Assembly (NCBI RefSeq): GCF_006345805.1 | Contig: NC_043001.1 | Location: 38,626,001 to 38,690,000, forward strand | Source of the DNA: Octopus sinensis | Lineage: Eukaryota | Length of the DNA: 64,000 nt | Direction of reading: 5' to 3' | Shown here: positions 3,462 through 28,349 of the stretch, one piece after another | Position numbering within the stretch: position 1 is the first letter of the stretch | Layout of the letters: each line of letters opens with the position of its first letter | The notes under the pieces: model-generated | Seen by the model: only the letters and a program-made list of their open reading frames with translations | What the model was told of the DNA's origin: nothing | Database searches by the model: none | Made by a program: the position numbers and the translations under genes

Positions 3462-3506
3462 CTTCAGGTTTCTTGCTTGGTTTATTGACATTAAGATCAT
3501 TCACAC
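3462..3506 (-). CDS. Array micro-exon copy 1 (45 nt, phase 1-1): GVNDLNVNKPSKKPE; tyrosine removed by in-frame 6-nt deletion
   Basis: ttcttaaag| acceptor and G|GTAAGC donor; length divisible by 3; no stop. Confidence 0.65.
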
Positions 3507-4327
3507 CTTTAAGAAATTAAAAAATAAATCCCATACAATTATAGATATTATTTAAAATATATTAATATTGTGCTGAAACTAACAGAACTAACAGTAGGAA
3601 TTAACAATATCATATTATTTTCTCCATTTACATCTTAATACTATTATGAAATTAATAGAAAAAAAAAACACTGAATGGTGTAAAGTACAATTAAAGAAGA
3701 ATAAAGGTAGAAAATATTAAAGATAAATTTGAAAATCTACAAGAGCAAAGCTTATGATAGAAATAATGCAAAATGCACAATTATGAATTTTTGTTCATGT
3801 ATAAGGTTACATAACTTGTTTCTATTCAAAGGAAAAAGGGGCTAAATATTTGCTAATTCTTTGCTTAATTCATCTTATCACCACCATCGTTATCATCGCC
3901 ACCATAACCTTCATCATTGTTTATCCACTGTCCATGCTAGCATGAGTTTGTGAAGCAATCATAATTAAAACCAGTTCCTTTTTGCTATCACAAAACACCT
4001 TGGTCTGATCCACTGATCATAATTCTCTCATATTTTTTCATTTTGGTGTTGTTTTTAAGGCTGACCTTTCACATCATTAATACTTCATAAAGCCCCTCTT
4101 ACTTTAATTCTTTCCAAATTTTCTCAGCTGTTATTGTAATTTCTGAGTAGCACTTCACCACATGTCACATATGCTTAGTTGGGACTTAGCATCAGCCACT
4201 GATGTTGGTTTTAGACTTCAATAGATTCTTCCATAAAAGTACAAGTTTTCTGTGTTATATGTATATATGTATTACTTAATAACTCTTGAAGTTTATGTAG
4301 TTTTCTTAATAGACTGAATATAATTAC

Positions 4328-4378
4328 CATAGGTTTTCTTGCTTGGTTTATTGACTTTAGCATAAAGGTCATTCACAT
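4328..4378 (-). CDS. Array micro-exon copy 2 (51 nt): DVNDLYAKVNKPSKKTY
   Basis: ttccctaaag| acceptor and G|GTAATT donor; symmetric phase 1; open frame. Confidence 0.75.
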
Positions 4379-4559
4379 CTTTAGGGAATTAAAGAAAGAT
4401 TTTATTTAAAATATATTAATGCTGTGATGAAAGTATCAGAACTAATATTAATGAAAAACATTCACTCCCTCTCATACATAAAGGTACAAAGAAGTATAAG
4501 CAGGAACTTATGTATTCATTGTTTACACTAAGAACACCTTATGAAATTTCTACCAGCTC

Positions 4560-5540
4560 ATTTCCTACATAAAGAGCACATTCATTTTCCTGATAGTATC
4601 TGAGTTCAGTCTTTCTTCCTATATGGTAAAAAATGTGTTTTTACTAGATTCAATTTAAAATCTTTAAAATGCAGATTTTGCTATCATGTTTGGAATTTCT
4701 GCCTAACCCAACTGTTCTACAGATTCTGTTATAAAAACTAGGTCATAAGCATAAAGGTGTTTCAAGGTTGTCTAAAATACATCTTTCATAGTTTGGAGCC
4801 TAAATAAACAGGAAAGGCTGAACACTGAGTCCTGATAAAACCTATATGCATACTAAATTCATTGCGATTGCTCACCTTACTCACAGTGAATCTGCACACG
4901 GTTTTTATGGCTCACACAACTAATTCGTGTAAGTTTGGTTTCCTTAGCATCTACCAGACCAGATAGTGAATTACTCAGTCCAAATTACTCTCCAAATTCA
5001 CAAATGCTTAGTATAGGAACTTCCACCTAGCTAAATACTTATTTGTAGTTATTTCATTTGGAATATGAGCTCAATGATACAGCTTCTTGGCATATCCAGG
5101 TTAATCTTATTCTTAATCAATTTTTCAATAGCGAATGAATATTGTAAATCTCTAAATATCTATTCTCAAGAGACCAGCTACATTTCCTACTTTTTCATTC
5201 TTCAATTGCACTGGAATGCTGGTAGCTCTTCTGCTTCTACTTGGAATAAATTCACTCTTTGCTTTTGACATCAGTAAGAATGAGAAAGCCATTGTTATTC
5301 TATACATCTAAAGTGTGTCTTCTCTCTCGCAGACTGCCTGGCAATTTGGATGGCCTTGCATGACTGATCCTCATCTTGCACAATATATGCAAACTTTTGT
5401 TATTTTACCTTTCCTTGTGCTACGTATAGCCAAAATTTAGCTTCTCTTTAGTTGTTTGATATTTTCCACATTGCCCCCTTTCTATAAATCTTTCGCTTGT
5501 TATGATGCTACCTATAATATTGTCTCAGTGTGTGCCACCT
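4560..5540 (-). mobile_element. Ancient RTE-clade LINE fragment duplicated with the array unit
   Basis: Minus-strand translation gives decayed RTE linker/RT text (KLIKNKINLDM..., LQE.YLA, AFVNLEK), matching the younger RTEs at 25.5-26.0 kb and 28.4-28.8 kb. Confidence 0.75.
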
Positions 5541-5716
5541 TACACCATCACTTATCTAATCTATAGAGTTCAGTATGAGGTACCATAAAAGCTGCAGATT
5601 TTTTTCTGTTATAATCTGTCTTAGATATATAATTTTTGTCATATGTATTGTCATATATGTTAGTTAATACCTCTTGAACTCTTGTTAGTTATATTAATGA
5701 ACTGAATCATGCTTAC

Positions 5717-5743
5717 CATCAGGCTTCTTCCTAGTTATATTGT
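5717..5743 (-). CDS. Array copy 3: original acceptor lost; internal AG would give a 27-nt Tyr-less exon DNITRKKPD
   Basis: No AG at the canonical position (5768-5769). Internal tatcctaaag| lies 24 nt into the ancestral exon. G|GTAAGC donor retained; frame preserved. Confidence 0.4.
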
Positions 5744-6597
5744 CTTTAGGATAAAAATTGAACACAAATTTAAGGTGTTAAAAAATAATGACATATAATT
5801 CTAGATAACATTTAAAATGATGTATTGAAAGTATCGGAACAAATATTAATGAAAAACATTCACTCTCTTATGCACATATATATTCAAAGTTGTATAAGCA
5901 GGAATTAGTAATATATTATTATTTTCTCCATTTAGCTCAGATTATCATAACCAAATCAACAGAAAAAACAAAAGAATGAAAATACACTGAGTGATAAAAT
6001 AAAGTACAATTAATGATTAATAAAGGTAGAAATTGTTAATACGCATGAAAATCTATGTTTACATGTAATGCAAAATGCACATTTATAAATTTTTGTGTTA
6101 TGTAGGTTATATTACAGTGGCATCTCTATTGAAAGGAAAGATGGCCTAAATATTTGCTAACTATTTGCTTAATTTATCTTGTCATTATCATTGCCCCCAT
6201 TGTCATCACATTGATCAAACACTGTCATGGGTTTGTCAAGCCATCATAATTAAAACCATTTCCTCTTGGTTGTCACAACACACCTTGGCTTGATCCACTG
6301 ATCATAATTCTCTCTTATCATCTCATATTGGTGTAGTTTCTGAGGCTGGACTTTCATTAGTCTTTGGTACTATATAATGTTCCCTTACGTTCACTCTCTC
6401 CAAACCTGTCTATTATCTGTTATGGTAATTTCCAAAGTAGGATTTTATGTGTCACTTTGCGTTTTTTTAGTTGGGACCTTGCACCAGTCACTAATTTTGG
6501 TTTTAAACCCCAGCAGATTGTCTGTGTTATATATATCGGTTAATATCTCTTGAAGTTTATATAGTTTAATGAATGGACTGAATATAATTATGCTTAC

Positions 6598-6648
6598 CAT
6601 CAGTTTGCATACGTGGTTTGTTAACTTTAGCATAAAGTTCTTCCACAT
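6598..6648 (-). CDS. Array micro-exon copy 4 (51 nt): DVEELYAKVNKPRMQTD
   Basis: ttccttaaag| acceptor and G|GTAAGC donor; open frame. Confidence 0.78.
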
Positions 6649-6829
6649 CTTTAAGGAATTAAAGAAAGATATGATGATTTAAATATAGTAATACTGTGCT
6701 GAAAGTATCAGAACTAATATTAATGAAAAACATTCACTCCCTCACATACATAAATATTCAAAGAAGTATAAGCAGGAACGTATGTATGTATTGTTTACAC
6801 TGGGAACACCTTATGATATTTCTACCAGC

Positions 6830-7495
6830 TCATTTCCAGCATAAAGAGCACATTCATTTTCCTGATGGTATCTGAGTCCAGTCTTTCTTCCTATATTTTG
6901 CTAGATTAAATTTAATGCCCTTCAAATACAGATTTTACTATCATGTTTGGAATTTCTATCTGACCCAGTTTTTCTACAGATTCTGATATAAAAGCAGAAT
7001 CATCAGCATACATGTGTTTTGAAAGTTATCTATCTAAAATACATCTTATATAGCTTGGAGGCCTAAAGAAACAGGAAAGGCTGAGCACTGAGTTTTGAAA
7101 ACCCCCATATGCACACTTAATTCATTGCTATCACTCACCTTGCTCACAGTGATTCTGCACAAGGCTTGTATGGCTCACACAACCAATTCATCAAAATCCA
7201 GTTTCCTTAGCAACTACCAGATCAGATTGTGAATGGCTCAGCCAAAGGATTTGTCCCTTTCTCCAAATTCACAAATGCTTGGTATAGGAGCTTACTCCTA
7301 GCTAAGTACTTCTTTGTAGTTATTTCATTTGGAATATGATCTCAATGATACAGCTTCTTGGCATATCCAAGTTAACCCTATTCTTAATCAACTTTCTAAT
7401 AACCCATGGATATTCCAAATTTTTATATATTTAGTCTCAAGAGACCAGCTACTTTCCCTATCTTTACATTGTTCAATTGTGCTGTTATAACGCTG
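6830..7495 (-). mobile_element. Ancient RTE fragment (array-borne), interrupted at 7495 by the CR1 insertion
   Basis: Paralogous to 4560-5200; continues at 11956 on the far side of the CR1. Confidence 0.75.
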
Positions 7496-7578
7496 TTAGT
7501 TAGTTAGTTAGTTAATTTGGCTCAAAAGCAAATAGCAAGGCCATGTAGGGGGACATAGAGTTAAGTACAGGGTGGTGT

Positions 7579-10500
7579 TCATGTAAAGAGTTCAGGCCAC
7601 TTGAGGTCAAGGGAGGCTTTGAACAAAGCGGTCGTCGGCATCTTCACCATCTCGTCTGGCAGCTTGTTCCATGGATCCGCAACCCGGACGGAGAAAGCTC
7701 CTCTCCTTCGATTGAGATGAAATCGTTGCAGGTAGAGCTTATCGGAATGACCCCGCAGCCGACGCTCTGGGGCAGGAGTGAAGAACAGCTCTTTCGAGAG
7801 GTTACACTTTCCACTTATGATGTTGTGGGCGAGAATGAGATCACCACGGCGGCGGCGTTTTTCTAGAGAATAAAGGTCGAGCGTCCTCAGCCTTTCTTCA
7901 TAGGACAAATTTTTGAGACCATGAACCATGCGGGTAGCCAGCTTCTGGACTCTTTTGAGATGCTGTATGTCTTTGAGGAGATAAGGAGAAGATGCTTGAA
8001 TCCCGTACTCCAATATGGGTCTCACCAGCGTGACATAGAGTGGTAGGAATATGGCTGCTGTGAGCATTCCGAATGACCGTCGAATCAAGAACAGAATTCC
8101 GCGTGCTTTGTTGGCAGCATGGACGCACTGGGCCGAAGGCGAAAATGAGGAATCCACCAAGATACCCAGGTCCTTTACCTGATCAGTCCTCTCCAGCAGC
8201 AGACGACCCGGCTCGAAATCAAGTTGCGTTGCAGGAGGAGAGCCAATAGGCAGATGACAGCACTTTGACACGTTCAGACACAGGTCCCATTCGTTAGACC
8301 ACCTCCAAATTTGGTGGAGGCATCGACGAAGATCCTCTATATCACCGCGAGGAGCGACCAGTTTGATATCATCGGCAAATAGAAGGGTGTGTTGCATGAG
8401 GTCGTCGGGCAAGTCATTTATGAAGACTAAGAACAATAAGGGCCCAAGCACTGAACCTTGAGGCACGCCACTGCTCGCACTGAAGACGTCGGACCGCGAA
8501 CCATTAACTTGGACTTGGAAGGAGCGATCTGAGAGGAAGGCACCAACCCATCGTACAATATCCGGATGGAAACTATATGCTTGAAGCTTGACAAGTAATA
8601 GGCGGTGGTTTACCGAGTCAAAAGCTTTGGCAAAGTCCAATAAAACGATGTCAACAGCATCACTATCATCGAGGATGCGCATCACCAATTCTTCCATTAC
8701 CAGTAAGTTGGTCAAGCATGATCTCTTCGGCACGAAGCCGTGTTGGGAATCAGAGATAGAGGCTGTGTTTTGGAGGTGGAGCATCATACTTTTCTTAAGG
8801 ATGGTTTCGAACATCTTGCTGATTATTGATGTAAGGGAAACCAGTCGGTAGTTAAGCGGGTCTTCGCGGCTCCCTTTCTTGAAAATTGGGCAGATTATCG
8901 CTGTTCTCCAGTCTGCAGGTATAACACCCGTCGCCAATGACATATTGAATAGATGTGTTAAGGGCTCGCAGATGACCGGAGCCAATGCTTTGATAACCCG
9001 TGGGTGTATGCCGTCAGGGCCATGACCCTTGTTGACATCGAGGCCTTGAATAACACGTTTGACTTCGTCCCGCGTGATGACCAATTGAAGCATTGGAGGT
9101 ACCGATCTATCAAATGGAGGGGGTTCACGACCATCATCTTGTTTGAAAATAGTTGAAAAAGCCTCGGCAAATAATTGACTCTGTTGATAAGGGTCCTCAA
9201 TCGATACGCCTGTTGAGTCTACCAACGTTGCAATCTGGTTGTTCAAGCGGGAATTCCATTGGACATGGGCAAAGAAGGTTTTTGGATTGCTACTGGCATT
9301 TGCCGCGATTTTGTAGTCATAACTGAAGCGTTCTTCCTTTTCAATTTTCACGGCTCGGTCTCGTTGAGTTTTGTACACCTCAAAAGCTGCAGTCGAATCC
9401 AGATTTTTGAATTCAGCCCAAGCAATATCTCTGAGTCGAAGTTCTCGTTTAACCTTCTTTGTCACCCAGGGCTTGTGTTTCTTCTTCATGGGAAGCCCAA
9501 CGGGAACTGCCTGGTCAGTCAACCAGATTACATATGCTTTGAGGGATGACCATAGTTCGTCAACTGAGGACAACGTCATCAGGGATCGCCAGTCCAGAAG
9601 CGCGGAAGCCTCGGTTAGAATTTCAAGATTAATTGCAGAGAAGACTCCACGTGGCAGCGAAGTAGTCGTGGGCGTAGAAAAAGTTGTGTGCATGATGAAC
9701 TTCAGGACCGCATGATCACTCTTGGCAAGAGGGGCGCACACAGATACGTCTGACACTGATCTTGGATAGCGGGAGAATACCAGATCCAGCATAGATGGCT
9801 GCTGCCCAGACCGATGCCTTGTCGGATATTCAACATGTTGCGATAGAAAACAATCTTCAGCCATGCCAAGAAGGGCCTGGTCGAACCGGGAAGATGTTGT
9901 ACAAACTGATGCGGGCCAATCAATCGTGGGAGCGTTGAAGTCTCCTAGTATCAAACAGTCATGCGAAGCTGAAACGAATCTTATCGCTTCGAGTAAATGA
10001 GCATCATCCTGGGGGTCGGCAAGAGGTGGCCTGTAAACAGCTAACACGGGCAGGCAAAACTCGGATAGGTTCAGCTTGCAATAGACGGCATCGAATTTTG
10101 TTGTAGGTTGAGCATTAGTGGGTAGAATACCGCTGGACGGTTTGTGATCAGATTTAACATACACAGCAACACCTCCAACTCGCCTTTTTTCTCTGTCACA
10201 TCTGAAGAGGACGTAGCCCTGTAGGTGGATTTCTGAGTCCTTTACTGCTGGAGTCAGCCAAGTCTCGGTGATAGCTATCACATCAGGGGAGTCACGTATG
10301 GCCAGTGTAAATAGTTCGCTGAAGTTTGGAAATAAGGAGCACGAGTTGGTATAGACGATGCTGAGCTGTGAAGTTTGAGGGGCGGGAGTTGGGGAACAAG
10401 CAGAATAAGGGGTATCAGAGATAGCATCGTTGACGGGGGTATCTACTTCACTTCGATTTGCCCTCAATTCACTTTCCCTGTCAGCACTACAGCATGCGAC

Positions 10501-10725
10501 CAGAGGTAGGACTTGATTATTTGTCCGTCTTGGATGCGTAAACCCTTCTCTCCCATCTGTTTTGTCATCTTTAGTTCGGATATTAGGTTTCTCCAGCGAA
10601 TTCTCTCTCTCAGTGAGTATTCCTCGCGAAAACCCATATTGGGGTCCTCCCAGACATGCGTCTGAGCTCTGTTCAGAAAGGTTGAAGCCTCCTGATCGGA
10701 AGAAAAGATTACCCTTATTGGGCAT
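7579..10725 (-). CDS. CR1 ORF2: apurinic endonuclease plus reverse transcriptase (1048 aa)
   Basis: APE motifs YTNSCSL, AITETWL, GGVAVYV, YRPP, LGDFN, LDLVF, SDH. RT motifs GPDGI, QHGF, DFAKAFD, GVPQGSVLGPLLF, FADD, DLG. CR1-type C-terminus RRRGDLI...RGH...FSVRV..WN.LP. Confidence 0.95.
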   Translation of the reverse strand: MPNKGNLFFRSGGFNLSEQSSDACLGGPQYGFSRGILTERENSLEKPNIRTKDDKTDGREGFTHPRRTNNQVLPLVACCSADRESELRANRSEVDTPVNDAISDTPYSACSPTPAPQTSQLSIVYTNSCSLFPNFSELFTLAIRDSPDVIAITETWLTPAVKDSEIHLQGYVLFRCDREKRRVGGVAVYVKSDHKPSSGILPTNAQPTTKFDAVYCKLNLSEFCLPVLAVYRPPLADPQDDAHLLEAIRFVSASHDCLILGDFNAPTIDWPASVCTTSSRFDQALLGMAEDCFLSQHVEYPTRHRSGQQPSMLDLVFSRYPRSVSDVSVCAPLAKSDHAVLKFIMHTTFSTPTTTSLPRGVFSAINLEILTEASALLDWRSLMTLSSVDELWSSLKAYVIWLTDQAVPVGLPMKKKHKPWVTKKVKRELRLRDIAWAEFKNLDSTAAFEVYKTQRDRAVKIEKEERFSYDYKIAANASSNPKTFFAHVQWNSRLNNQIATLVDSTGVSIEDPYQQSQLFAEAFSTIFKQDDGREPPPFDRSVPPMLQLVITRDEVKRVIQGLDVNKGHGPDGIHPRVIKALAPVICEPLTHLFNMSLATGVIPADWRTAIICPIFKKGSREDPLNYRLVSLTSIISKMFETILKKSMMLHLQNTASISDSQHGFVPKRSCLTNLLVMEELVMRILDDSDAVDIVLLDFAKAFDSVNHRLLLVKLQAYSFHPDIVRWVGAFLSDRSFQVQVNGSRSDVFSASSGVPQGSVLGPLLFLVFINDLPDDLMQHTLLFADDIKLVAPRGDIEDLRRCLHQIWRWSNEWDLCLNVSKCCHLPIGSPPATQLDFEPGRLLLERTDQVKDLGILVDSSFSPSAQCVHAANKARGILFLIRRSFGMLTAAIFLPLYVTLVRPILEYGIQASSPYLLKDIQHLKRVQKLATRMVHGLKNLSYEERLRTLDLYSLEKRRRRGDLILAHNIISGKCNLSKELFFTPAPERRLRGHSDKLYLQRFHLNRRRGAFSVRVADPWNKLPDEMVKMPTTALFKASLDLKWPELFT

Positions 10726-11633
10726 GGTCTAGTATCTGAGGTTGAGTTCGCTTGGAATCTTCCTAGCCGAGCGACCTTATGGATACTGACATTTTCGTTG
10801 ACAGAGAACAATTCTCCAACTAAAATGGAAACAAAATTAATGTCTTCTTTTAGGCGGTTTATGCCTGTATCACAGGTGGATTCAGCTTTACCATAAATTA
10901 TTGCTGATCTTGAGTGGGCAAAATGTTCTCTACTATGAGCTGCGGTATTCGATTCTTCGTTGGATGATTTCGAAAGGGTGGTTTCATAGCCATCAGACTT
11001 ATGTCGGCCTGTGGGGTCGATCGGAATGGGTTTAGTGGTCATAACTTTCCTGCCTGGTTTGGAACTGCACTGCCTCTTCTTCGGTTTGGGGGAGCACCAC
11101 TCCCCAGATGAACTCACATCGAGATCGTTCAGAATTGGTTGAGCAATGGCATTAATGGGAAGGACAAGTGAGGGAGAATCCAAACAGATTTTATCGTGAT
11201 CAGGTTTCATAGCTAAATCTGCCCCACTGGAGTTTTGACTACGTTTCTTCTTTTGGGGAGAACAACGGTCTTCAGGTGGGTTTGAGTCTACACTCCTCAA
11301 ATTAGGTTGGGGAACCTCCGGGACCGAAAAGGCAGATGAGGAAGAATCCGCACAGGAACGATCATGTGCAGAAACGACCGCCGGTTCCTTCGCCTTCTTT
11401 GGCCGCTTCGATTTTGTTCCCTTCGGTTTGGATGTCTCCAGGGAAGAAATCAAGGGTGGCTCTGCATCAATAGGAGACTGTTTATTCAGTAAAAGAGCAA
11501 CAACAGACTTTAGGTGCTCGACCTCTTGTTTGAGCAACAGCAACTGCTCGTTGAGCTGACTATTGGTAGGACCATCATCTTGATGAGAAGCCCTTCTTGC
11601 AGATCTCAGTTTCGATCTGTAGGTAGCTGACAT
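10464..11633 (-). CDS. CR1 ORF1 (389 aa; coiled-coil N-terminus, RRM-like C-terminal half)
   Basis: Open 389 aa upstream of ORF2; heptad-like LNEQLLLLKQEVEHLKSVV; IIYG.AES...IHKVARLG...RP.PIRVIF segment typical of CR1/L2 ORF1. Confidence 0.85.
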   Translation of the reverse strand: MSATYRSKLRSARRASHQDDGPTNSQLNEQLLLLKQEVEHLKSVVALLLNKQSPIDAEPPLISSLETSKPKGTKSKRPKKAKEPAVVSAHDRSCADSSSSAFSVPEVPQPNLRSVDSNPPEDRCSPQKKKRSQNSSGADLAMKPDHDKICLDSPSLVLPINAIAQPILNDLDVSSSGEWCSPKPKKRQCSSKPGRKVMTTKPIPIDPTGRHKSDGYETTLSKSSNEESNTAAHSREHFAHSRSAIIYGKAESTCDTGINRLKEDINFVSILVGELFSVNENVSIHKVARLGRFQANSTSDTRPCPIRVIFSSDQEASTFLNRAQTHVWEDPNMGFREEYSLRERIRWRNLISELKMTKQMGEKGLRIQDGQIIKSYLWSHAVVLTGKVN

Positions 11634-11955
11634 GATAGATGGTTGACCAAAAACAATCTTCTATGGGCTCTAGGACAAATCTGAGTTAAATCAGGAACAA
11701 AAAACAGCTGCAATCCTTGTAGGAGTAGGCAACAGCAGACAAAATCTGAGAGAGTTTGGGCTGAGCCGAATCACAATCCAAGATTGAAAGCAGACGGTGA
11801 AACGAGTCGGGAACCCTTCCTAATTGTCTGAAGCAGCTTTAGGATAAGGGATAGTAGGTCCAACTTTAGAATATTGATATGCATGTAAAATGTTCCACAC
11901 GATTAAATATCATTTGACGTGCCATTTAGTACTTCAATAATTGCGTCTGCGCATG

Positions 11956-12320
11956 TAAAACTGGAATGCTGGTAGCTCTTCTGCTTCTATTTGGAATAAA
12001 CTTACTCTCTTTACTTTTGGCATTAGTAAGACTGAGGAAGACATTGTTATTCTATACATCTATCCAGTGTCTCTTCTCTCTTGCAAACAGTCAGTCAATT
12101 TGGATGGACTTGCATGACTGATCCTCATCTTGCACAATATATGCCAACTTTTGTTATTTTGTCTTTCCTTGTGCTATGTATAGCCAACGTTTAGCTTCTC
12201 TTTAGTTGTTTGTTATTTTCCCCATTGCCTTCTTTCTACAAGTCTTTCACTTGTTATGATGCTACCTATAATATTGTCTCAGTGTGTGCCACCTTGCACC
12301 ATTACTTATCTAATCTACAG
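11956..12320 (-). mobile_element. Ancient RTE fragment (continuation of 6830-7495)
   Basis: Paralogous to 5210-5540. Confidence 0.7.
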
Positions 12321-12475
12321 AGTTCAGTACATAGTGCCATAAATACTGCAGATAATCTTCTGGTATAATCTGTCTTAGATATATAATTTTTGTCATATAT
12401 ATTGTCATATATGTTAGTTAATACCTCTTGAACTCTTGTTAGTTATATTAATGAACTGAACATAATCATGTTTAT

Positions 12476-12502
12476 CAGCAGGCTTCTTCCTACTTGTATT
12501 GT
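12476..12502 (-). pseudogene. Array copy 5: pseudo-exon (donor mutated to ATAAAC)
   Basis: Homologous to copies 3/6/8 (DNTSRKKPA frame), but the GT donor is lost. Confidence 0.6.
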
Positions 12503-13249
12503 CTTTAAGATAAAAATTATACACTAAATTAAAGAGTTAAAAAAATAAATGACATATGACTATAGATAATATTCAAAATATATTTATGAAGCATTGAAAG
12601 TATCAGAACAAATATCAATGTGAAACATTCACTCCTTCATACACAAATATACTCAGTGCTGTATATGTAGGAAATAGGAAAGTTACATTATTTCCCCCAT
12701 TTAGCTCAGATTATCATTACCAAATTAAAACAAAACAAACAATGAAAAATATTGAGTGGGATAATGAAGTACAATTAAGGATTAATAAACGTAAAAATTG
12801 TTGATATACATTCCAAAATCTATACGAGTAAATTTTATATATAATGCAAAATGCACATTTATAAACTTTTGTTTTATGTAGGTTATATTACACTGTTGTC
12901 CCTAGTCAAAGAAAAATTGATCAATATTTGCTAACTCTTTGCTTAATTCATTTTGTCATCATTAGTCAGCATTTTGTCATCATCAGCATCATCATTGATC
13001 AACTACTGTTGATGCCCTGCAAAGGTTTGTCAAGTGATCATGATTAAAATCAGTTCCTCTTTGCAATCACAGCACACCTTGGCTTCATCCACATCATAAT
13101 TCTCCCATATCATCTCATTTTGGTGTAGTTTCTGAGGTTGGACCTTCAAGTCTTTGGTACTATATAAAGCTCCCTTACCTCCACTCTTTGACTAAAAGGC
13201 AGTGTACCAGCATGGCTGCAGTCAAACGAATGCAACAAGTAAAAGGATA

Positions 13250-14090
13250 ATTATTCAACAGAGTCATTAGTATTAATTTCCAAGGTTTGTTGTTGAGAAT
13301 ACCTCTTTCATAGTTTGGAGGCCTAAATAAGCAGGAAGGTTGAGCACTGAGATCTGATAAACCCCATATGCACACTAAATCCATTGTTATTACTCACCTT
13401 GCCCATAATGATTCTGCACAAGGCTTGTATGGCTCACACAACCTATTCATATATGTCCTGTTTCCTTAGCATCTACCAGGTTAGATACTAAATGACTAAG
13501 TCAAAGGGTTTGTTCCTTTCTCCAAATTCACAAATGCTTGGTATTGGAGCTTACTCAAAGCTAAGTACCTCTTGTATATATTTCATTTGGAATATGAGCT
13601 CAATGATACAGCTTCTTGTCATATCCAGATTGATACTATACTTAATCAACTTTCCAATAACCCATGGATATTCTAAACCTCTAAATATCTAGTCTCAAGA
13701 GAGCAGCTACATTTCCTACCTTTTCATTCTTTAATTGCACTGTCATGAAACTGTAAAACTGGAATGCTGTTAGACCTTCTACTTCTACTAGGAATAAATT
13801 CAGTCTTTACTTTGGTATCAGTAAGACTGAGGAAGCCATTGTTAATCTATATATTTATAGAGTGCCTCTTCTCTCTTGCAGACTGTCAGCCAATTTGGAT
13901 GGACTTGCATGTTTGATCCTCATCTTGCATAATACATGCAAACTTCTGCTTTTTTTGCCCTTCCCTTTGCTATGTATAGCCACAATTTAGCTTCTCTAGT
14001 AGTTTGATATTTTCCTTATTGCCTCCTTTCTACAAGTCTTTCACTTGTTATGGTGCTACCTATAATATTATCTCAGTGTGGGCCACCTTG
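13250..14090 (-). mobile_element. Ancient RTE fragment (array-borne), preceded by the 3' stub of a SINE at ~13185-13250
   Basis: Paralogous to 4700-5540. The stub ctttgactaaaaggcagtgtaccagcatggctgcagtcaa matches the end of the SINE at 15515-15903. Confidence 0.72.
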
Positions 14091-14254
14091 CACCAGCCAC
14101 TTATCTAATCTATAGAGTTCAGCATGTGGTTCAGTAAAGGTTGCAGATTTTCTTCTGTTATAATCATAGAAACATAATTTTTGTCATATATGTTAGTTAA
14201 AACCTCCCAAACTCTTGTTAGTTATATTAATGAACTGAACATAATCATGCTTAC

Positions 14255-14281
14255 CAGCAGGTTTCTTCTTACTTGTATTGT
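14255..14281 (-). CDS. Array copy 6: acceptor shifted, candidate 27-nt Tyr-less exon DNTSKKKPA
   Basis: Long AG-free zone upstream; first AG is tatcctaaag|; G|GTAAGC donor intact; in frame. Confidence 0.42.
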
Positions 14282-15146
14282 CTTTAGGATAAAGATTGAC
14301 CACAAATTAAAAAAAATGATGACATGATTATAGATAACATTTAAAATATATTTGGGATGTATTCAAAGTATCAGAACAAATATTAATGAAAAATATTCAC
14401 TCTCTCATACACATATACATTCAAAGTTGTATAAGCAGGGATTAGTAATATCATATCATTTTCCTCATTTAGCTCAGATTATCATTACCAAATGAACAGA
14501 AAAAAACCAACGAATAAAAAAAACATTAAATGATATAATGAAGTAAAATTAAAGATTAATAAAGGTAAAAATTGTTAACACACATGAAAAATCTATAAAT
14601 TTACATGTAATGCAAAATACACATTTGTAAATTTTGTTTTATGTAGGTTATATAACACTGTGCTTTGTATTCAAAGGAAAATTGGCCTAAATATTTGCTA
14701 ACTCTTTGCTTAATTTATCTTATCATCATTATCATTGATCAACCACTGTTGATGCTAACATGGATTTGTCCAGCGATCATAATTAGAATCAGTTCCTCTT
14801 TGCTATCACAACACACTTTGGCTTGATCCACAGATCATAATTCTCTCTTATCAACTCAATTTGGTGTAGTTTCTGAGGCTGGGCCTTCAAGTCTTTGGTA
14901 CTATATAAAGCTCCCTTACTTTCACTCTGTCCAAACCTGTCTCTTATATTTTCTGGTAATTTCCAAAGTAGTATTTTATATGTTACTTTGTGCTTTTTAT
15001 TTGGGACCTTGCACCAGCCACTGATTTGTACTTTCCACCTCAGCAGGTTGTCCCATAAGAACACAAATTTTCTCTGTTATATGTATCAACTAAACTGCTT
15101 GAAGTTTATATAGTTTCCTTAATGTACTGAATATAATTATGCTTAC

Positions 15147-15197
15147 CATAGGTTTCCTTGTTTGGTTTATTGACTTTAGCATAAAGGTCATTCATAT
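15147..15197 (-). CDS. Array micro-exon copy 7 (51 nt): DMNDLYAKVNKPNKETY
   Basis: ttccctaaag| acceptor and G|GTAAGC donor; open frame. Confidence 0.78.
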
Positions 15198-15514
15198 CTT
15201 TAGGGAATTAAAGAAAGATTTTATTTAAAATATATTAATGCTGTGATGAAAGTATCAGAACCATTCACTCCCTCACATACATAAAGGTATAAAGAAGAAC
15301 AAGAAGGAATTTTTGTATGCATTATTTAGACTGAGAACACTTGTTGAGATTTCTACCAGCTCATTTCCTGCATACAAAACACATTCTTTTTCCTGATGAT
15401 ATCTGAGTTCAGTCTTTCTTCATATATAGTAAAACATTTGTTTTTACTAGATTCAATTGAAAATCTTTTAAATGCAGATTTTGCTATCATGTTTGGAATA
15501 TCTATCTGACCTTA

Positions 15515-15903
15515 GGCGCAGGCATGGCTGTGTAGTAAGAAGGTTGCTTCTCAATCACATGTTTCTGGGCTCAGTTTCACTGTGTGGCATCAGGCAAGTG
15601 TCCTCTATTATATCTTCGAGCTGACCAAAGCCTTGTGTGTGGATTTGGTAGACAGAAACTGAGAGATGTCTGTCGTATATATATATATATATATATAGTG
15701 TGATTGTGCCTGTGTTTGACCCCCATCGTCGCTTGACAACTGATGTTGGTGTGTTTATGTTCCTACAACTTAATGGTTTGGCAAAAGTGACTGACAATAA
15801 GTAATAGGATTACAAACAATACGTCCTGGGGCCAATTTCTTTGACTAAAATGCTGTGTACCAGCATGGTCACAGTTAAAGGACTGAAACAAGTAAAAGAA
15901 TAA
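15515..15903 (+). mobile_element. tRNA-derived SINE with internal (TA)n
   Basis: tRNA-like head ggcgcaggcatggctgtgtagtaagaag, followed by ggcatcaggcaagtg (CORE-like block) and tail gactgaaacaagtaaaagaataa. Absent from the paralogous sites at ~6960 and ~18490. Confidence 0.8.
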
Positions 15904-15904
15904 G

Positions 15905-16790
15905 TGTTCGACAGATTTTGTTATCAGAGCTACATCATCAGCATACAGGTGTTTCCAAGGTTAGTTGTTGAGAATACCTCTTCCATAATTTGGAGGCCTA
16001 AATAAGCAAGAAGGCTGAGCACTGGCATATGATAAACCCCATATGCGCATTAAATTCGTTGCTATTACTCACCTTGCCCATAATCATTCTGCATATGGCA
16101 TGTATGGCTCACACAACCTATTCATGTAAGTCCAGTTTCCTTAGAATCTACCAGGTTAGATACTGAATGACTAAGTCAAAGGGTTTGTCCCATTCTCCAA
16201 ATTCAAAAAGGCTTGGTATAGGGGCTTACTCAAAGCTAAGTACCTCTTGTAGTTATTTTATTTGGGATATAAGCTCAGTGATACAGTTTCTTGGCATATC
16301 CAGGTTGATCCTATTCATAATCAACATTCCAATAACCCATGGATATTCTAAACCTCTAAATATCTAGTCTCAAGAGAGCAGCTACATTTCCTACCTTTTC
16401 ATTCTTTAATTGCACTGTCATGAAACTGTAAAACTGGAATGCTGTTAGACCTTCTACTTCTACTAGGAATAAATTCAGTCTTTACTTTGGTATCAGTAAG
16501 ACTGAGGAAGCCATTGTTAATCTATATATTTATAGAGTGTCTCTTCTCTCTTGCAGACTGTCAGTCAATTTGGATGGACTTGCATGTTTGATCCTTATCT
16601 TGCATAATACATGCAAACTTCTGCTTTTTTTGCCCTTCCCTTTGCTATGTATAGCCACAATTTGGCTTCTCTAGTTGTTTGATATTTTCCTTAATGCCTC
16701 CTTTCTACAAGTCTTTCACTTGTTATGGTGCTACCTATAATATTGTCTCAGTGTGTGTCACCTTGCACCAGCCACTTATCTAATCTATAG
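15905..16790 (-). mobile_element. Ancient RTE fragment (array-borne)
   Basis: Near-identical to 13250-14090. Confidence 0.72.
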
Positions 16791-16928
16791 AGTTCAGCAT
16801 ATGGTTCAGTAAAGGTTGTTATAATCTACTGTTATAATCATAGAAACATAATTTTTGTCATATATGTTAGTTAAAACCTCTCAAACTCTTGTTAGTTATA
16901 TTAATGAACTGAACATAATCATGCTTAC

Positions 16929-16955
16929 CAGCAGGTTTCTTCTTACTTGTATTGT
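16929..16955 (-). CDS. Array copy 8: acceptor shifted, candidate 27-nt Tyr-less exon DNTSKKKPA
   Basis: Same structure as copy 6. Confidence 0.42.
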
Positions 16956-17599
16956 CTTTAGGATAAAGATTGACCACAAATTTAAAAAATGATGACATGA
17001 TTATAGATAACATTTAAAATATATTGAGGATATATTCAAAGTATCAGAACAAATATTAATGAAAAACATTCACTCTCTCATACACATATACATTCAAAGT
17101 TGTATAAGCAGGGATTAGTAATATAATATTATTTTCTTCATTTAGCTCAGATTATCATTACCAAATTAACAGAAAAAAAACAATAGAATAAAAGACATTG
17201 AGTGGTATAGTGAAGTACAACTGAAGATTAATAAAGGTAAAAATTGTTCATACACATGAAAATCTATGTTTACATGTAATGCAAAATACACATTTGTAAA
17301 CTTTTGTTTTATGTAGGTTATATAACACTGTGCTTTGTATTCAAAGGAAAATTGGCCTAAATATTTGCTAACTCTTTGCTTAATTTATCTTATCATCATT
17401 CTCATTGATCAACCACTGTCAATGCTAGCATAGGTTTGTCCAGCGATCATAATTAAAACCAGTTTATCTTTGCTATCACAACACACCTTGGCTTGATCCA
17501 CATATCATAATACTCTCATATCATCTCATTTCGGTGAGGCTGGACCATCAAGTCTTTGGTACTATATAAAGCTCCCTTACCTCCACTCTCTGACTAAAG

Positions 17600-17905
17600 T
17601 CAAATGAATGCAACAAGTAAAAGAATAATTGTTCAACAGAGTCATTAGTATTAGTTTCCAAGGTGAGTTGTTGAGAATACCTCTTTCATACTTTAGTGGC
17701 CTAAATAAGCAGGAAGGCTGAGCACTGAGTCCTGAAAAATTCCATATGCATACTAAATTCATTGCTATTTGCTGACCTTACCCACAATGATTCTGCACAA
17801 GGCTTGTATGGCTCACACAACCTATTCGTGTAAGTCCAGTTTCCTTAGCATCTACCTGGTCAGATACTGAATGACTAAGTCAAAGAGTTTGTTCTTTTCT
17901 CTAAA
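17600..17905 (-). mobile_element. Truncated ancient RTE fragment (array-borne)
   Basis: Paralogous to 13250-13530; cut by a deletion junction at ~17910. Confidence 0.65.
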
Positions 17906-18126
17906 TTCACCATTTCCAAACCTTATCTGTCTCTTATCTGTTATGGTAATTTCCAAAGTAGTATTTTATGTGTTACTGTGTTTTTTTATTTGGGACCTTG
18001 CATCAACCATTGATTTGTACTTTCAACCTCAGCAGATTGTCTCATATTTTCTCTGTTATATGTATCAGTTAATATCTCTTGAAGTTTATATAGTTTTATG
18101 AATGGACTGAATATAATTATGCTTAC

Positions 18127-18177
18127 CATCAGTTTGCATACGTGGTTTGTTGACTTTAGCGTAAAGGTCTTCCACAT
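18127..18177 (-). CDS. Array micro-exon copy 9 (51 nt): DVEDLYAKVNKPRMQTD
   Basis: ttccttaaag| acceptor and G|GTAAGC donor; Tyr codon TAC versus TAT in the other copies (synonymous). Confidence 0.78.
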
Positions 18178-18339
18178 CTTTAAGGAATTAAAGAAAGATA
18201 TGATTTAAATATAGTAATGTTGTGCTGAAAGTATCAGAGCTAATATTAATGAGAAACATTCACTCCCTCACATACATAAATATTCAAAGAAGTATAAGCA
18301 GAAATTTCTGTATGCATTGTTTAGATTGGTAACACTCAG

Positions 18340-19175
18340 CCCATTTCCTGCATACAGAGCACATTCATTTTCTTGATGGGGTCTGCTCAGTCTTTCTTCC
18401 TACATGGTAAAACATTTGTTTTTACTAGATTCAAGATAAAATCTTTTAAGTGCAGATTTTCCTATCATTTTTGGAATTTCTATCTGACCCAATTGTTCTA
18501 CAAATTCTGATATAAAAGCTAAGCCATCAGCATACAAGTGTTTCCAAGTTTATTTGTCTTAAATACATCTTTTATAGCTTGGAAGCCTATATAAACAGGA
18601 AAGGCTGAACACGGAGTCCTGATAAACCCCCATATGCACACTAAATTCATTGCTATTGCTTAACTTGCTCACACTGATTCTGCACATGGCTTCTATGGAT
18701 CACACAACTTATCCATTTAAGTCCATTTTCCTTGGCATCTACCAGATCAGATAGTGAATGACTCAGTCAAAAGGTTAGTCCCATTCTCTAAATTCACAAA
18801 TGCTTAGTATAGGAACTTACTACTAGCTAAGTACTTCATTGGAATATGATCTCAATGATAGAGCTTGGCACAAAACCAAACAGTATCTCATCCAGGTTAA
18901 TCCTTTTCTTAAATAATTTTTAAATGACCCATGGATTTTCTAAATCTCTCAGAAGCTACTCTCAAGAGATGAACTAACTTCCCTAAATTTGATTGTTTAA
19001 TTGCTCCACGTGTTGTAATACTGTGAAATTAGATAGCTGGAACCTCTGCTGCTTCTACTTGGAGTCAATTCACTCTCTTCTATTGTCATCAGAAAGACTG
19101 TGTAAATTATTAAATTTCTATACATCTACCCAGTGTCTCTTCTCTCTTGCAGACTGTCTGTCAATTTGGATGGCC
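18340..19175 (-). mobile_element. Ancient RTE fragment (array-borne); best-preserved copy
   Basis: Minus strand reads RINLDEILFGFVP, matching RVSLDEMQFGFVP of the younger RTEs in this window. Confidence 0.8.
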
Positions 19176-19666
19176 TAACATGTTATTAAGGATTAATATA
19201 GAAAACATGGAAGATATATTTGAAATCTCCAAGAGATAGATGTAATGCAATATGTAGATTAAATTTTTTTGTTTATGTATTAGGTTATATTACGCTGTTA
19301 TTTCTACTCAAACTGTGTAGTAGTAACTGTGTTCAGTCTTTCTTTGTATATAGTAAAACATTTTTGGTTGATTAAATTTTTGGCGTAGTTTCTAAGGTTG
19401 GTTCACCAAGTCTTTCGTACAACATAAAGCTCCCTTTCTTTCATTCTTTCCAAACCTGTCTCTTAGTGGTTATGTTAATTTCCAAAATAGTATTTCACAT
19501 GTTACTTTTTGTTTTGTATTTGGGACCTTGAACCAGCCATTGATCTTGGCTTTAGAGCTCAGTAGATTGTCCCATAAAAGCACAAGTATTCTTTATGATA
19601 TGTGTCAGTTAATACCTCTTGAAGATTATGAAGTTTTATGAATGGACTGAATATAATTAGGCTTAC

Positions 19667-19717
19667 CATCAGCTTGCTTGCTTGGTTTATTGACTTTGGC
19701 ATAAAGTTCATTCACAT
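19667..19717 (-). CDS. Array micro-exon copy 10 (51 nt): DVNELYAKVNKPSKQAD
   Basis: ttctttaaag| acceptor and G|GTAAGC donor; open frame. Confidence 0.78.
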
Positions 19718-20558
19718 CTTTAAAGAATTAAAGAAAGATATTATTTAAAATATATTAATGCTGTGCCAGAACTAATATTAATGAGAAACATTAACTCTCT
19801 CACATAAATAAAGGTACAAAGTAGTATAAGTAAGAATTATCAAATTCACTTAATTTTTATCTGTTTACTTCAGGGTATCATTGAGTGGTGTAAAGTACAA
19901 TTAAAGGATTAACAAAGATAGAAAATAGTGAAAATATATTTGAAAATCTGCAAGAGGCAAAGTTTATATTTGTAACACAAAATGCATATTTATAAAGTTT
20001 TGTTTAAGAATATTCATATGTAGGTTATTACACTGTTTTCTCTACTGAAAGGAAACTAGGCCCAAATATTCGCTGACATGTTGCTTAATTTATGTTGTCA
20101 TTATTGTCATCATAACCATCATTCATCCACTTTCCATGCTAGTATGGGTTGGTCAAGCCATCATAGTTAAAATCAATTCCTTTTTGCTATCACAACACAC
20201 CTTGGCTTAGACTATTGATCATTATTCTCTCATATCATTTCATTTTGGTGTAGTTTCTGAGACTGGCCCTTCAAGTCTTCTCTAGTACTACATAAAACAC
20301 CCTTACTTTCATTTTATCCAATCGTGTCTCTTAGCTATTATGGGAATTTCTGAGTAGTACTTTGCCACTTGTCACTTATGCTTAGTTGGGTCCCTGCACT
20401 AACCACTAACCTGAGCTTTAGACCTTAGCAGGCTATCTCATAAAGGCACAGTTTCTATCTTAAAAGTGTGTATATTCTCTTCCCAACTGTCTAGTGTCAG
20501 TTAAAACTTCCCTAAATGTATGTACTTATATTAATGAATTGAATATAATTATGCTTAC

Positions 20559-20600
20559 CATTAGTTTTCTTTCCTGGTTTATTGACTTTAGCATTCATAT
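20559..20600 (-). CDS. Array micro-exon copy 11 (42 nt): (N/D)MNAKVNKPGKKTN; DLY removed by in-frame 9-nt deletion
   Basis: ttccttaaag| acceptor and G|GTAAGC donor; in frame. Confidence 0.65.
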
Positions 20601-21599
20601 CTTTAAGGAATTAAAAAAAAAAGAACATACAATTATAGATAATATTTAAATATATTGTGCTGCAAGTATCAGGACTAATGTTAATGAGAAATATTCACTT
20701 CCTCAAACACATAATTGAACAAACTAGTATGAGTTAGCAATATTACACCATTTTTGCTTTTTCATTTGGAAACTACATTAATACAGTTGAGTGTCTGCAA
20801 GAGCTAAAGTTTATTATGTACATGAATGTAAAATTCACATTGTCAAAGCTACAATATAGGTTACTAAATTGTATACTCTAATCAATGCAAGAATGAACCA
20901 AAATGTTTGCAAAATCTTTGTACATTGTATACTCTACTAGAAGGAAAGTAACCAAAATGCTTGCAGATTTCTAGCTTAATGACTGCCTCCTCCTCCTCCC
21001 CTTCTTCTTCTTCTTTGCCACTGCCATCACCAGCATCACCAATATTGTTACTTTTCATTTGATTTCTATGCCGACAAGGGTTGGTTGAGAAGTCTTGTTT
21101 AAAAAAAAAAGTGACTGTTCAGGATCAGATCCACCTAGGCTTGGTCCCTTGACCATAACTCTTGCATATGTTATCATGTTTATGTGGTTTCTCAGACTGG
21201 ATTACATTCATAACATCAACCATTGCAAAATGTGTGTACAAAGTGCATTTTTTCCCATGGCACCAGCACTAAAAAGGTTGTCATGTCCTTGACAAAACAG
21301 GACTAAAGTGTTCTCTCAATACTTCAATGCAAATCTACTAAACAGTTTACAGAGTTTTGGATATATTCTTTTATGCTAACAGAATTAGTAATTTAGTCAC
21401 AGACATTTTACCCTATGATAAATTTGCGCATGCATCAAACACTTCACAAAATGCATTAAATGCACCAGCACTTGTGATGTTACCATATATCCAGATTTTC
21501 ATTGCAATAGAAATAGGTGGCAAGGTTAGCTTGTAAAAGAGAGCACAACTGATCAACAGTCAAGATATTGATGAAAACAGAGGTTGAATGTCAATGAAA

Positions 21600-22149: not shown

Positions 22150-23640
22150 GTAATAATACCAAACTTAAGCTATCTTCCCACAATTCTACCCACACAACAA
22201 CATATACTAACTGCAATACCATTTCCCAATCCAATACTGATATAGATTGTACTTCAGGTCTCCCTCACTAATAATGGACCAACAGAGCTCAGCCACCCCA
22301 GCAGTAAACTCCAACTACAGAGCAGAAAGGAAATCTTACAATTGTCAAGTTTCTCAACTATGCCTTCTTGGAGGCTTCTGTCTTTGTAAAAATGTAGTCT
22401 ACAAATGCCATGTTATAACACCACACTCCCACCAAACAAGGGTATATATTGCTGACACAGTTGATTGCAAGTGCCGCTATCTTGCATACTTATATACACA
22501 ACCTTAAATCTCAAAATATTCCATGTACCCTATCCTGGTCCATGATAAGTGAGGCTTCCCCAAATAATGCAAAATACAGTATGCGCAAATTATGTTTAAG
22601 AAAATTGCTAACCATCCTTTCTCTTCACAACACATTATTTAATAAATTCTCTGATGTAATTTTGTCTTGTAAATACAGGTACATCTTTTATTAAATCTAT
22701 GTAATCTCAACTATTAGTATCCATACTCAAAATTAACCGTGAACTAAGGCATAGTCATCCTAGCAACCTACTACATAATAAGGACTACCCCCACAATTTC
22801 TCAAACCTTTCCAAATTCTTCTAAACCACTACCTACTTCCCTCATAACTTCTCCACCCTCCTAAATAGCTTCTTATTTCTTCCCCTTACCAAAAGTAATT
22901 AACTCCTTTGGATACTAACCAACCAACTTCTACCCTCTCCCTATTCACATCCCTCTATTCAATTTCATACACCTCTGCATATCATGGCAATCCCCCTCCA
23001 ATACTGACCCAATTACTTTGTCCTACTAACAACTGCTATATTGACCATCGATTCACCTCCCACCCTATCTTCTCTCACATCTCTCCATACCTTAGCCATC
23101 TCCCTCTGCTATTGAACCAGTCAACTTTATTTCTCTCAAATAATGGCCATTTCCTTTCTCACTATCTCAACCATTAATTGTATAGCCTTCTTACAAAGTA
23201 ACATAAAGGACTACCATTTACATACTACCTAAATCACCCTCCCCTCTTCCTCTTACTTTCCATCTCTACTACTATAACTCCCTACAAGCCTCCTTATTAA
23301 TGCCTAATCATTGAAATTTATTTTCTCCTCTCACTATTCTCTATCTGAATACCTCTCCAATTCCCTCCTCTAATACACTTAATCTCCACAAAATCATTCC
23401 ATCTTTGAGCTTATTTCTGTCAACACCTCAAATGTAAGATCTGTTCCCTGAAGATGGAGGCTCATCTCATTCGACAATCAATCTACAAACATTATTTTGG
23501 ATCCCCGATCCCCCAGAAACAGCTGTTGGATTTGTAATACTTGATATCATTTCTATTCTGTGAAAATCAAACCGTTTTGTATATGTATTTTAATATACTT
23601 TGTACATTGACCCACCTAACTTACTTATCCTTACATTTAG
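22150..23640 (+). mobile_element. Penelope-like element remnant (GIY-YIG endonuclease C-terminus plus terminal repeat)
   Basis: CLLGGFCLCKNVVYKC..VYIADT and LK..NIP.TLSWSMI.EA.P....KLCL.KLL.IL...LFNK.S are GIY-YIG-like. A CT-rich tail follows and ends in a hammerhead motif. Confidence 0.75.
23445..23530 (+). ncRNA. Minimal type I hammerhead ribozyme motif
   Basis: Stem I TCC/GGA; core CTGAAGA (23448-23454); stem II TGGAG...CCCCA (one mismatch) with a long loop; GAAAC-AGCT-GTT with palindromic stem III. Confidence 0.65.
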
Positions 23641-23683
<43 letters not shown>

Positions 23684-23691
<8 letters not shown>

Positions 23692-24043
23692 TAACAATAA
23701 GGGTTTTGCAACAAGTTACTTGACCACATACTGAAAATTTTAGAAACAACGCTTGGTCGGAAATATAGGGGGCAAGTTTTCCTCTCATTTCTAGATTTAT
23801 CGGAATATTATGTTGATGAAAGAAATGAGTCTAATCCAGAAACGTACGTCCATAATTAACCGAAGACTGTTTGATCTCATTATTTTTCTTCTTTTTTTTG
23901 CCATATGTGAGTTACAAATATTGTTGTCTGTGGAGACATATTTTTGTAGAAAAAGGAAATAGTAGTCCTTTGGCTGCTATTTCTAAAATTTTTGGTATGT
24001 GGTCAAGCAACTTGTTGCAAAACCCTTATTGTTATAATTATAT
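23684..24043. mobile_element. MITE with ~60-bp terminal inverted repeats, TA-flanked
   Basis: The left end TATAATTATAACAATAAGGGTTTTGCAACAAGTTACTTGACCACATAC..AAATTTTAGAAA is the reverse complement of 23980-24043 with few mismatches. No coding capacity. Confidence 0.85.
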
Positions 24044-24144
24044 AAGTTTTTACCGAATACGGTCCTTTTCCATACCGAAATACTACTAGATGAAATTTGT
24101 TGATTTTATTAAATTAATTATCTTTCACCCTATATCTGTAATAA

Positions 24145-24220
<76 letters not shown>

Positions 24221-24299
24221 ATATTTAAAGGGCTAAAGAACCACTATGTGGTCAGCCATATATGTATATATATATATATATATACATACATCTATATAT

Positions 24300-26020: not shown

Positions 26021-26029
26021 CCATGGTGA

Positions 26030-26608: not shown

Positions 26609-26643
<35 letters not shown>

Positions 26644-28290: not shown

Positions 28291-28318
28291 ATGATGATAT
28301 AGATATACCTATATATAT

Positions 28319-28349
<31 letters not shown>

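Follow-up and report, generated by a model that had tools for sequence, protein, structure and literature searches.

Tandemly duplicated symmetric mini-exons in Octopus sinensis DNA that probably encode tyrosine-based SH2-docking motifs

The site of Cbp/PAG that is recognized by the SH2 domain of Csk is YSSV (PMC3492796), and the human PAG1 site is given in a peptide table as AMYSSVNKPG (PMC6277618). The vertebrate proteins Dok-1, -2 and -3 are adaptors whose C-terminal phosphotyrosines recruit SH2 proteins, Csk among them, and those of Dok-3 bind the Csk SH2 domain (PMC7550416). YAxV-type motifs of the bacterial EPIYA effectors bind Csk and SHP2 (PMC3593179). Tails assembled from duplicated tyrosine-motif exon units are already known in annotated genes, and the locus described here adds one. 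It lies in a stretch of 64,000 nucleotides (nt) of Octopus sinensis DNA (contig NC_043001.1, forward-strand positions 38,626,001 to 38,690,000), which we call the window and in which positions are counted from the first letter. On its minus strand, between 3462 and 20600, are 11 exon-plus-intron units in tandem, which are probably an expressed exon array encoding SH2-docking motifs, as judged from the sequence. The unit of this array is unusually small and regular, and its motif unusually well conserved, in comparison with the annotated analogues.

The units are numbered c1 to c11 by position (Table 1). A profile built from them and run against the 64-kilobase (kb) window returned all 11 on the minus strand with E-values of 6e-53 to 5e-73 and no further copies, and a 20-mer seed had five matches against 0.03 expected by chance. 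In each unit a T-rich tract leads to an AAAG acceptor, followed by a 51-nt exon of phase 1-1 and a G/GTAAGC donor (the slash marks the splice site), and the intact exon encodes (D)VNDLYAKVNKPSKKTY. The exon lengths found in the array (51, 45, 42 and 27 nt) are all divisible by three and all phase 1-1. Donors of the form G/GTAAxx are present in 10 of the 11 copies, and the ancestral acceptor is intact in seven of the 11. These are equal-phase repeated exons with splice sites of their own, any subset of which keeps the reading frame, as in a tandem cassette mini-exon array. Transcription of the array would run from c11 (20600) to c1 (3462), the final array exon. Since the donor of c1 and the acceptor of c11 are both intact, further exons are expected on either side, probably outside the window.

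The main question then is whether these exons are coding. The intact motif has the consensus [D/E][D/E]LYAKVNKP, followed by a variable basic linker. Within the core codons LYAKVNKP of the five intact exons there are four variable sites, all synonymous, and the flanking codons vary non-synonymously. When VEDLYAKVNKP of c9 is compared with the same peptide on contig L001, from a distant species, seven of the 11 codons differ, every one of them synonymously. The pattern of insertions and deletions (indels) points the same way. A sequence-only reading of this DNA had proposed to compare indel lengths in the exons with those in the neighbouring introns, and the comparison bore out the expected constraint. 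The alignment of all 11 copies shows 22 indel events, four of them divisible by three, over 240 columns of flanking intron; at this rate the 51 columns of the exon should contain 3.8 frameshifting indels. They contain none (Poisson p = 0.022, with gap counts possibly inflated by the alignment of AT-rich intron sequence), and a frame constraint on the exons is therefore likely. The only two exonic indels are of 6 and 9 nt; over whole introns, 27% of 85 indels are divisible by three. The array exons thus appear to be genuine coding sequence.

By sequence, the motif follows the Csk-SH2 docking pattern pY-[S/A/T]-x-[V/I], with YAKVNKP here against YSSVNKP in PAG1. Songyang et al. are said to have reported in 1994 that the Csk SH2 domain prefers pY-(T/A/S)-(K/R/Q/N)-(M/I/V/R). 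Cbp/PAG1 (human ...EEISAMYSSVNKPGQ...) and the array share a tyrosine, a small residue, any residue and then V-N-K-P, with an acidic residue before the tyrosine, and in Cbp/PAG1, too, the site is within a disordered tail that holds several tyrosine motifs. PAG has a single site, encoded in a large exon and placed behind a transmembrane and palmitoylation anchor, whereas the array has five to seven copies, each in a mini-exon of its own, and no membrane anchor was found in the window. The EPIYA-type effectors resemble the array in their YAxV core, their tandem duplication and their disordered setting; they differ in being bacterial and in having Pro at -2, where the motif of this animal gene has Asp or Glu. 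Compared with EPxYAxV, a class defined for bacterial effectors (PMC3593179), the array motif has Y-A-x-V and an acidic residue upstream and lacks the Pro at -2. The immunoreceptor tyrosine-based inhibitory motif was considered and rejected: Val at +3 fits, but position -2 is Asp or Glu in all intact copies (N-D-L-Y-A-K-V, E-E-L-Y-A-K-V), where a hydrophobic residue or Ser is required. A search of PDB sequences with the repeat gave only chance matches to troponin.

A degenerate DNA pattern for D/E-LYAKVNKP, run against metagenome contigs, detected a soil-bacterial protein family in which the 8-mer match is coincidental and which we rejected as a relative. All 120 of the 120 loci (L003-L122) belong to one unrelated protein family with a GC content of 0.54-0.67, mostly about 0.58, containing RLELYAKVNKPPEVKF and the conserved stretch RLELYAKVNKPPEVKFKDLEAVV. 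An exhaustive profile search identified a BID-domain type IV secretion effector of Bartonella taylorii (P0028) with the identical 11-mer EDLYAKVNKPR twice, among other tyrosine motifs. An SH2-docking function of the motif, copied by pathogens, would fit this observation.

Four proteins (P0001-P0004, including Ridgeia piscesae NP493_21g02022) are small, have an IRS-type PTB domain and carry one, two or three copies of the motif at the end. Their PTB domain matches Pfam PF02174 with E = 7e-9, and the nearest solved structures are the PTB domains of Dok2 and Dok1 (E about 5e-12). Contig L001 shows P0001 to consist of the last part of an IRS-type PTB domain and, after it, three motif copies; a 177-amino-acid R. 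piscesae protein and the 181-amino-acid product of a short transcript-like contig have one or two at the extreme C-terminus. These Dok-like adaptors of annelids and relatives share with the array the identical (D)VEDLYAKVNKP(K/R), a location in a C-terminal tail and a copy number that varies, in their case among paralogues. Their motifs share a single terminal exon and come straight after the PTB domain, whereas the array has one exon per motif. Dok/IRS-type adaptors have a C-terminal tail with tyrosine motifs that recruit SH2 proteins, and the array is comparable by sequence: it has five intact copies of [DE][DE]LYAKVNKP, which match the C-terminal motif of the relatives over as many as 13 residues. 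The vertebrate Dok proteins differ in having a PH domain and non-repetitive YxxP-type sites. No PH or PTB part was found in the window; there is no exon for an IRS-type PTB domain (PF02174) within the 43 kb upstream of the array, and such a domain could lie outside the window.

The profile search that detected the Bartonella effector also provided matches in other architectures. In P0008, LYATVNKPR occurs three times and LYANVGKPR once, with SH3 and RhoGEF exons downstream of them. A scallop immunoglobulin (Ig) superfamily receptor (P0020) has in its tail the modules SDYAVVQKP, DAVDAVVNKPK and NDVYAEVKKP. In the scallop 'hemicentin-2-like' protein XP_021366345.1 the tail is encoded by three tandem genomic copies of a 216-nt plus 33-nt exon pair with a period of 1311 nt (L124, 29677-32768), and each 216-nt exon encodes three tyrosine motifs and one tyrosine-less DAVDAVVNKPK. 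The lumpfish Ig receptor LOC117731292 has twelve PLYSTVS modules, and its annotated isoforms carry 8-12 tyrosine modules of 19 amino acids. Like the array, the lumpfish and scallop tails consist of short tandem modules with a Yxx[V] motif, and in lumpfish the number of modules varies between annotated isoforms. They differ from it in the motifs themselves (PLYSTVS in one, SDYAVVQKP and NDVYAEVKKP in the other), in unit size (19 amino acids in one, 72 + 11 in the other) and in their Ig ectodomains, no Ig domain having been found in the window. Because the motif type occurs in several unrelated architectures, it is predicted to be a portable element for SH2 docking, as opposed to the signature of a single protein family. 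The very well conserved EDLYAKVNKP connects annelid Dok-like adaptors, the tails of receptors and RhoGEFs of other invertebrates, the site for Csk in vertebrate PAG and one effector of bacteria. The motif is a good candidate for a docking site of Csk type that has been conserved, testable with peptides such as DVEDLYAKVNKPR.

On a eukaryotic contig (L123, 1495-4843), four copies of LYA[TN]V[NG]KPR stand directly upstream of exons matching SH3 and RhoGEF, and the motif type there decorates a putative guanine nucleotide exchange factor.

The introns of the array are of two alternating types, short (821-1147 nt) and long (1338-1731 nt), each with its own repeat families. The repeat unit is an alpha exon, an intron of ~0.85 kb, a beta exon and an intron of ~1.5 kb. 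The alpha exons are c11, c9, c7, c4 and c2, the beta exons are c10, c8, c6, c3 and c1, and c5 is a solo beta copy. In a distance tree of exons with their flanks, c3, c5, c6 and c8 group tightly in one clade (0.04-0.18); c2, c7, c4 and c9 form a second (0.13-0.21), to which c10 is close, and c1 and c11 are furthest from all others (p-distance 0.29-0.41). Divergence over whole introns is 0.09-0.15 among the central pairs, and the two edge pairs are 0.23-0.25 from them. Since the intron-type repeat families alternate and the tree agrees with the intron divergences, the array is shown to have expanded through unequal crossing-over, with a pair of exons as the unit. The same two sets of distances imply that an acceptor was lost once, in one beta exon, with the pair amplified afterwards, and that the two tyrosine-less full exons are old copies, one at either end of the array. 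The long-type introns on both sides of c5 indicate that its partner exon has been deleted.

Two further features of the units were observed. The exons c7 and c2 end in a second tyrosine (KETY and KKTY; 15147-15149 and 4328-4330, minus strand), the +1 to +3 context of which is set by the next exon. Joined to the 27-nt form of c6, c7 would read TY-D-N-T, a pYxN context of Grb2 type; joined to any full exon, it would read Y-D-V or Y-D-M. In nine of the 11 units an intronic block of ~90 nt is found 30-100 nt upstream of the exon in the minus-strand sense. It is at least as conserved as the exon (divergence 0.04-0.11, where the 3' half of the exon has 0.19-0.21) and might contain the branch site or an element that controls splicing.

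Our preferred reading, to which we assign a probability of roughly 0.6, is that the minus-strand region is the repetitive tail of an animal signalling gene, in which symmetric mini-exons bearing one docking motif each have been duplicated in tandem. As motif resemblance suggests, the tyrosine of each motif would, when phosphorylated, recruit an SH2 domain of Csk or SHP2 type, and the five intact copies in series would provide a multivalent scaffold tail. With symmetric exons, copies could be gained, skipped or crippled without damage to the frame, and the tyrosine-less copies would be by-products of this turnover. One beta lineage would have lost its acceptor once and been amplified into c3, c5, c6 and c8, which would most likely be skipped or would add a linker of at most nine residues. 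The oldest copies, c1 and c11 at the edges, would each have taken a small in-frame deletion in the motif core, and they may persist because exons that are still spliced in tolerate only frame-preserving changes. If the exons are expressed, the locus would be a clean natural example of a multivalent phosphotyrosine scaffold being built and remodelled, in which unequal crossing-over multiplies a symmetric mini-exon with one motif and the frame survives when copies are put out of action.

Several observations weigh against this reading. No other exon of the gene was recognized in the 64 kb, whether for PTB, Ig, transmembrane, SH3 or other Pfam domains. When the PTB adaptors, the receptors of scallop and lumpfish and the other matches served as tblastn queries against the window, the motif exons alone were returned, and a Pfam scan of ~5,200 residues of minus-strand open segments outside the transposon blocks gave only a sub-threshold match to a DDE transposase. 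No transcript or protein of the locus was found in the searched collections; a protein search with the spliced array, 27-nt exons included, gave one weak match (P0001) and no product of the locus. At the nucleotide level the exons show no more conservation than the proximal introns (about -100 to +25), and divergence is faster in the exon's 3' half than in the intron, so that conservation by itself does not separate coding constraint from recent duplication or gene conversion. Motif similarity is the sole ground for naming an SH2 partner, and the occurrence of the same 8-mer in the soil-bacterial family means that the 8-mer by itself is not diagnostic.

Some of these observations would also fit an array that is not expressed, being either what is left of a degenerating gene tail or a repeat family with a fossil exon: the searched collections contain no matching transcript or protein, the surrounding 64 kb is transposon-rich with no other exon recognizable, the proximal introns are conserved equally with the exons, and the core motif is lost in six of the 11 copies, by deletion of the tyrosine or degeneration of the core. 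We nevertheless regard this as quite improbable, since the differences among the five intact copies in the core are only synonymous (as are all seven codon differences between c9 and the distant species, with no non-synonymous ones), frameshifting indels are depleted in the exons, and strong donors have been kept in 10 of the 11 copies. Another pertinent question is whether the exons, if expressed, are used in series or as alternative cassettes, with one or a few of the eleven in each transcript and isoforms of varying valency, some without a docking site. The symmetry and similar length of all the exons, their near-identical flanking splice signals, the conservation of the upstream intronic block and the lumpfish isoforms that differ by whole modules, from 8 to 12, would all suit such cassettes. 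On the other side, relatives whose exons are uninterrupted have two or three motifs one after another, which makes serial use the habit of the family, and the pairing of docking site and selector associated with mutually exclusive splicing was not noticed, no search having been aimed at such pairing. We consider cassette use unlikely, with some weight left to it.

The tyrosine-less copies deserve separate consideration, as the sequence-only reading had proposed that the tyrosine was lost three independent ways, always in frame, under selection for non-phosphorylatable modules. The changes themselves are as it described them. Copy c1 lacks 6 nt, turning LYAKV into LNV in a 45-nt exon (GVNDLNVNKPSKKPE), and c11 lacks 9 nt, with the loss of DLY, in one of 42 nt (DMNAKVNKPGKKTN). 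In c3, c6 and c8 the acceptor is gone, AAATTT standing where other copies have AAAG/AT; the first available AG is 24 nt downstream in the same phase, with none in the preceding 55-116 nt, and would yield a 27-nt exon. All five copies keep the G/GTAAGC donor and the phase and have no stop codon, and the exon boundaries named (3506, 20600, 5743, 14281 and 16955) are exact. The earlier description had passed over the paired, higher-order organization of the array and the ambiguity of the c1 deletion, and it had omitted c5, a member of the acceptor-less lineage that has lost its donor as well (GT to AT). A new AG 3 nt downstream of its ancestral acceptor would give an in-frame 48-nt exon, VYNFYLKDNTSRKKPA, although c5 is most likely a dead pseudo-exon. 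Three distinct mutational events are indeed present, yet the acceptor loss is a single one, inherited by four copies according to the tree. Likewise, the frame is preserved (the depletion of frameshifts holds), but this needs no special selection, because skipping a crippled copy keeps the frame as well as the cryptic AG does. A constraint on the frame is also what one would ordinarily expect of any exon that is spliced in.

The claim of selection fared less well. If the tyrosine-less modules (c1, c11 and the three 27-nt micro-exons) were positively maintained as non-phosphorylatable spacers or decoys that set the spacing or valency of the docking sites, one could point to both exonic deletions removing or disabling the tyrosine while VNKP is retained in c1 and c11 without any nucleotide change; to the AG of the 27-nt exon, which is the first past the old pyrimidine tract and in phase; and to scallop P0020, in which the tyrosine-less DAVDAVVNKPK stands between tyrosine modules in all three repeat units. 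The chance that deletions of 6 and 9 nt both overlap the tyrosine codon is ~0.04, a figure calculated post hoc and with the c1 deletion ambiguous, as the loss was either of YA, with K changed to N, or of AK, with Y changed to N. There are only three events, picked after the fact, and the acceptor loss is one copied event in a decaying lineage, whose sibling c5 lost the donor too and whose ancestral core is degenerate as well (LYPKDNTS). Within that lineage the 27-nt segment evolves like intron: its divergence is 0.105, against 0.06-0.146 in the flanks, and c3 and c6 differ at five of the 27 sites, four non-synonymous to one synonymous, which is at least the intron rate of 0.13-0.15 for the same pairs. 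The tyrosine-less full exons are the diverged edges of the array, and the edge copies of a tandem array are expected to be the most diverged and degenerate. The c11 deletion removes GACCTTTAT between two ATG triplets, and this microhomology makes it look like a product of slippage; a deletion of 6 nt has, moreover, occurred in the c2 intron, where there is no frame to keep. Nucleotide conservation of the c1 and c11 exons was rejected as proof of selection, since a windowed profile shows the proximal introns to be equally conserved. The scallop tyrosine-less modules are near-identical recent duplicates with no evidence of long-term retention, and all relatives other than scallop keep the tyrosine in every module. 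Positive maintenance of spacers or decoys thus has, in our judgement, only a slim chance of being right; it would be interesting if true, but the data here do not carry the claim. The tyrosine-less copies are best explained as frame-constrained decay. A broader proposal, which we also think very unlikely, is that [D/E][D/E]LYAKVNKP is an ancient, near-optimal docking site for Csk's (or SHP2's) SH2 domain, shared across animals and copied by pathogens, with its valency and spacing tuned by exon duplication and cassette splicing and with tyrosine-less VNKP modules (c1, c11 and the scallop DAVVNKP) retained as spacers or competitors.

Table 1. Features of the array and its introns, in window coordinates and in order of transcription for the exon copies
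Feature	Position	Strand	Description
c11	20559-20600	-	42 nt, phase 1-1, DMNAKVNKPGKKTN; first array exon transcribed; DLY lost by 9-nt deletion; edge copy
c10	19667-19717	-	Intact, 51 nt, DVNELYAKVNKPSKQAD; sole beta-type exon still with the motif
c9	18127-18177	-	Intact, 51 nt, DVEDLYAKVNKPRMQTD; 11 residues equal the C-terminal motif of annelid-type Dok-like PTB adaptors
c8	16929-16979	-	Acceptor AAAG/AT changed to AAATTT; possible 27-nt exon 16929-16955, DNTSKKKPA; 51 nt identical to c6
c7	15147-15197	-	Intact, 51 nt, DMNDLYAKVNKPNKETY; last codon is the second tyrosine
c6	14255-14305	-	Without acceptor; possible 27-nt exon 14255-14281, DNTSKKKPA
c5	12476-12526	-	Solo copy of the acceptor-less lineage; donor GT changed to AT; long-type introns on both sides, alpha partner missing
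c4	6598-6648	-	Intact, 51 nt, DVEELYAKVNKPRMQTD
c3	5717-5767	-	Without acceptor; possible 27-nt exon 5717-5743, DNITRKKPD
c2	4328-4378	-	Intact, 51 nt, DVNDLYAKVNKPSKKTY; donor G/GTAATT
c1	3462-3506	-	45 nt, GVNDLNVNKPSKKPE; tyrosine lost by 6-nt deletion and one substitution; edge copy; donor intact
Intronic block	4437-4527, 5835-5925, 6709-6799, 12604-12694, 14372-14462, 17045-17135, 18235-18325, 19767-19857, 20670-20760		
LINE-type retrotransposon	7579-11633	-	Within the c5-c4 intron, in the orientation of the gene

A 6-nt deletion is also present in an intron, directly after the donor of c2 and outside any reading frame, and accounts for the variant donor of that copy. The 5.8-kb gap in the array is due to the insertion, between c5 and c4, of a retrotransposon of the long interspersed nuclear element (LINE) type. 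Both of its open reading frames (ORFs) are intact: ORF1 encodes 389 amino acids (10464-11633) and ORF2 1048 (7579-10725), the latter with endonuclease and reverse-transcriptase domains assigned from its homologues. The best database identity of ORF2 is only 37%, to flatworms and a cuttlefish.

The window as a whole is AT-rich, transposon-rich animal DNA, in which no cellular gene other than the exon array was recognized. Its remainder is mostly repeats (23600-24330, 48900-51000, 25500-30600, 39100-40100 and 57600-58960). These comprise long microsatellites of (TA)n and (CA/TG)n type, several reverse-transcriptase fragments in both orientations, a retroelement pol fragment and remnants of DDE transposases.

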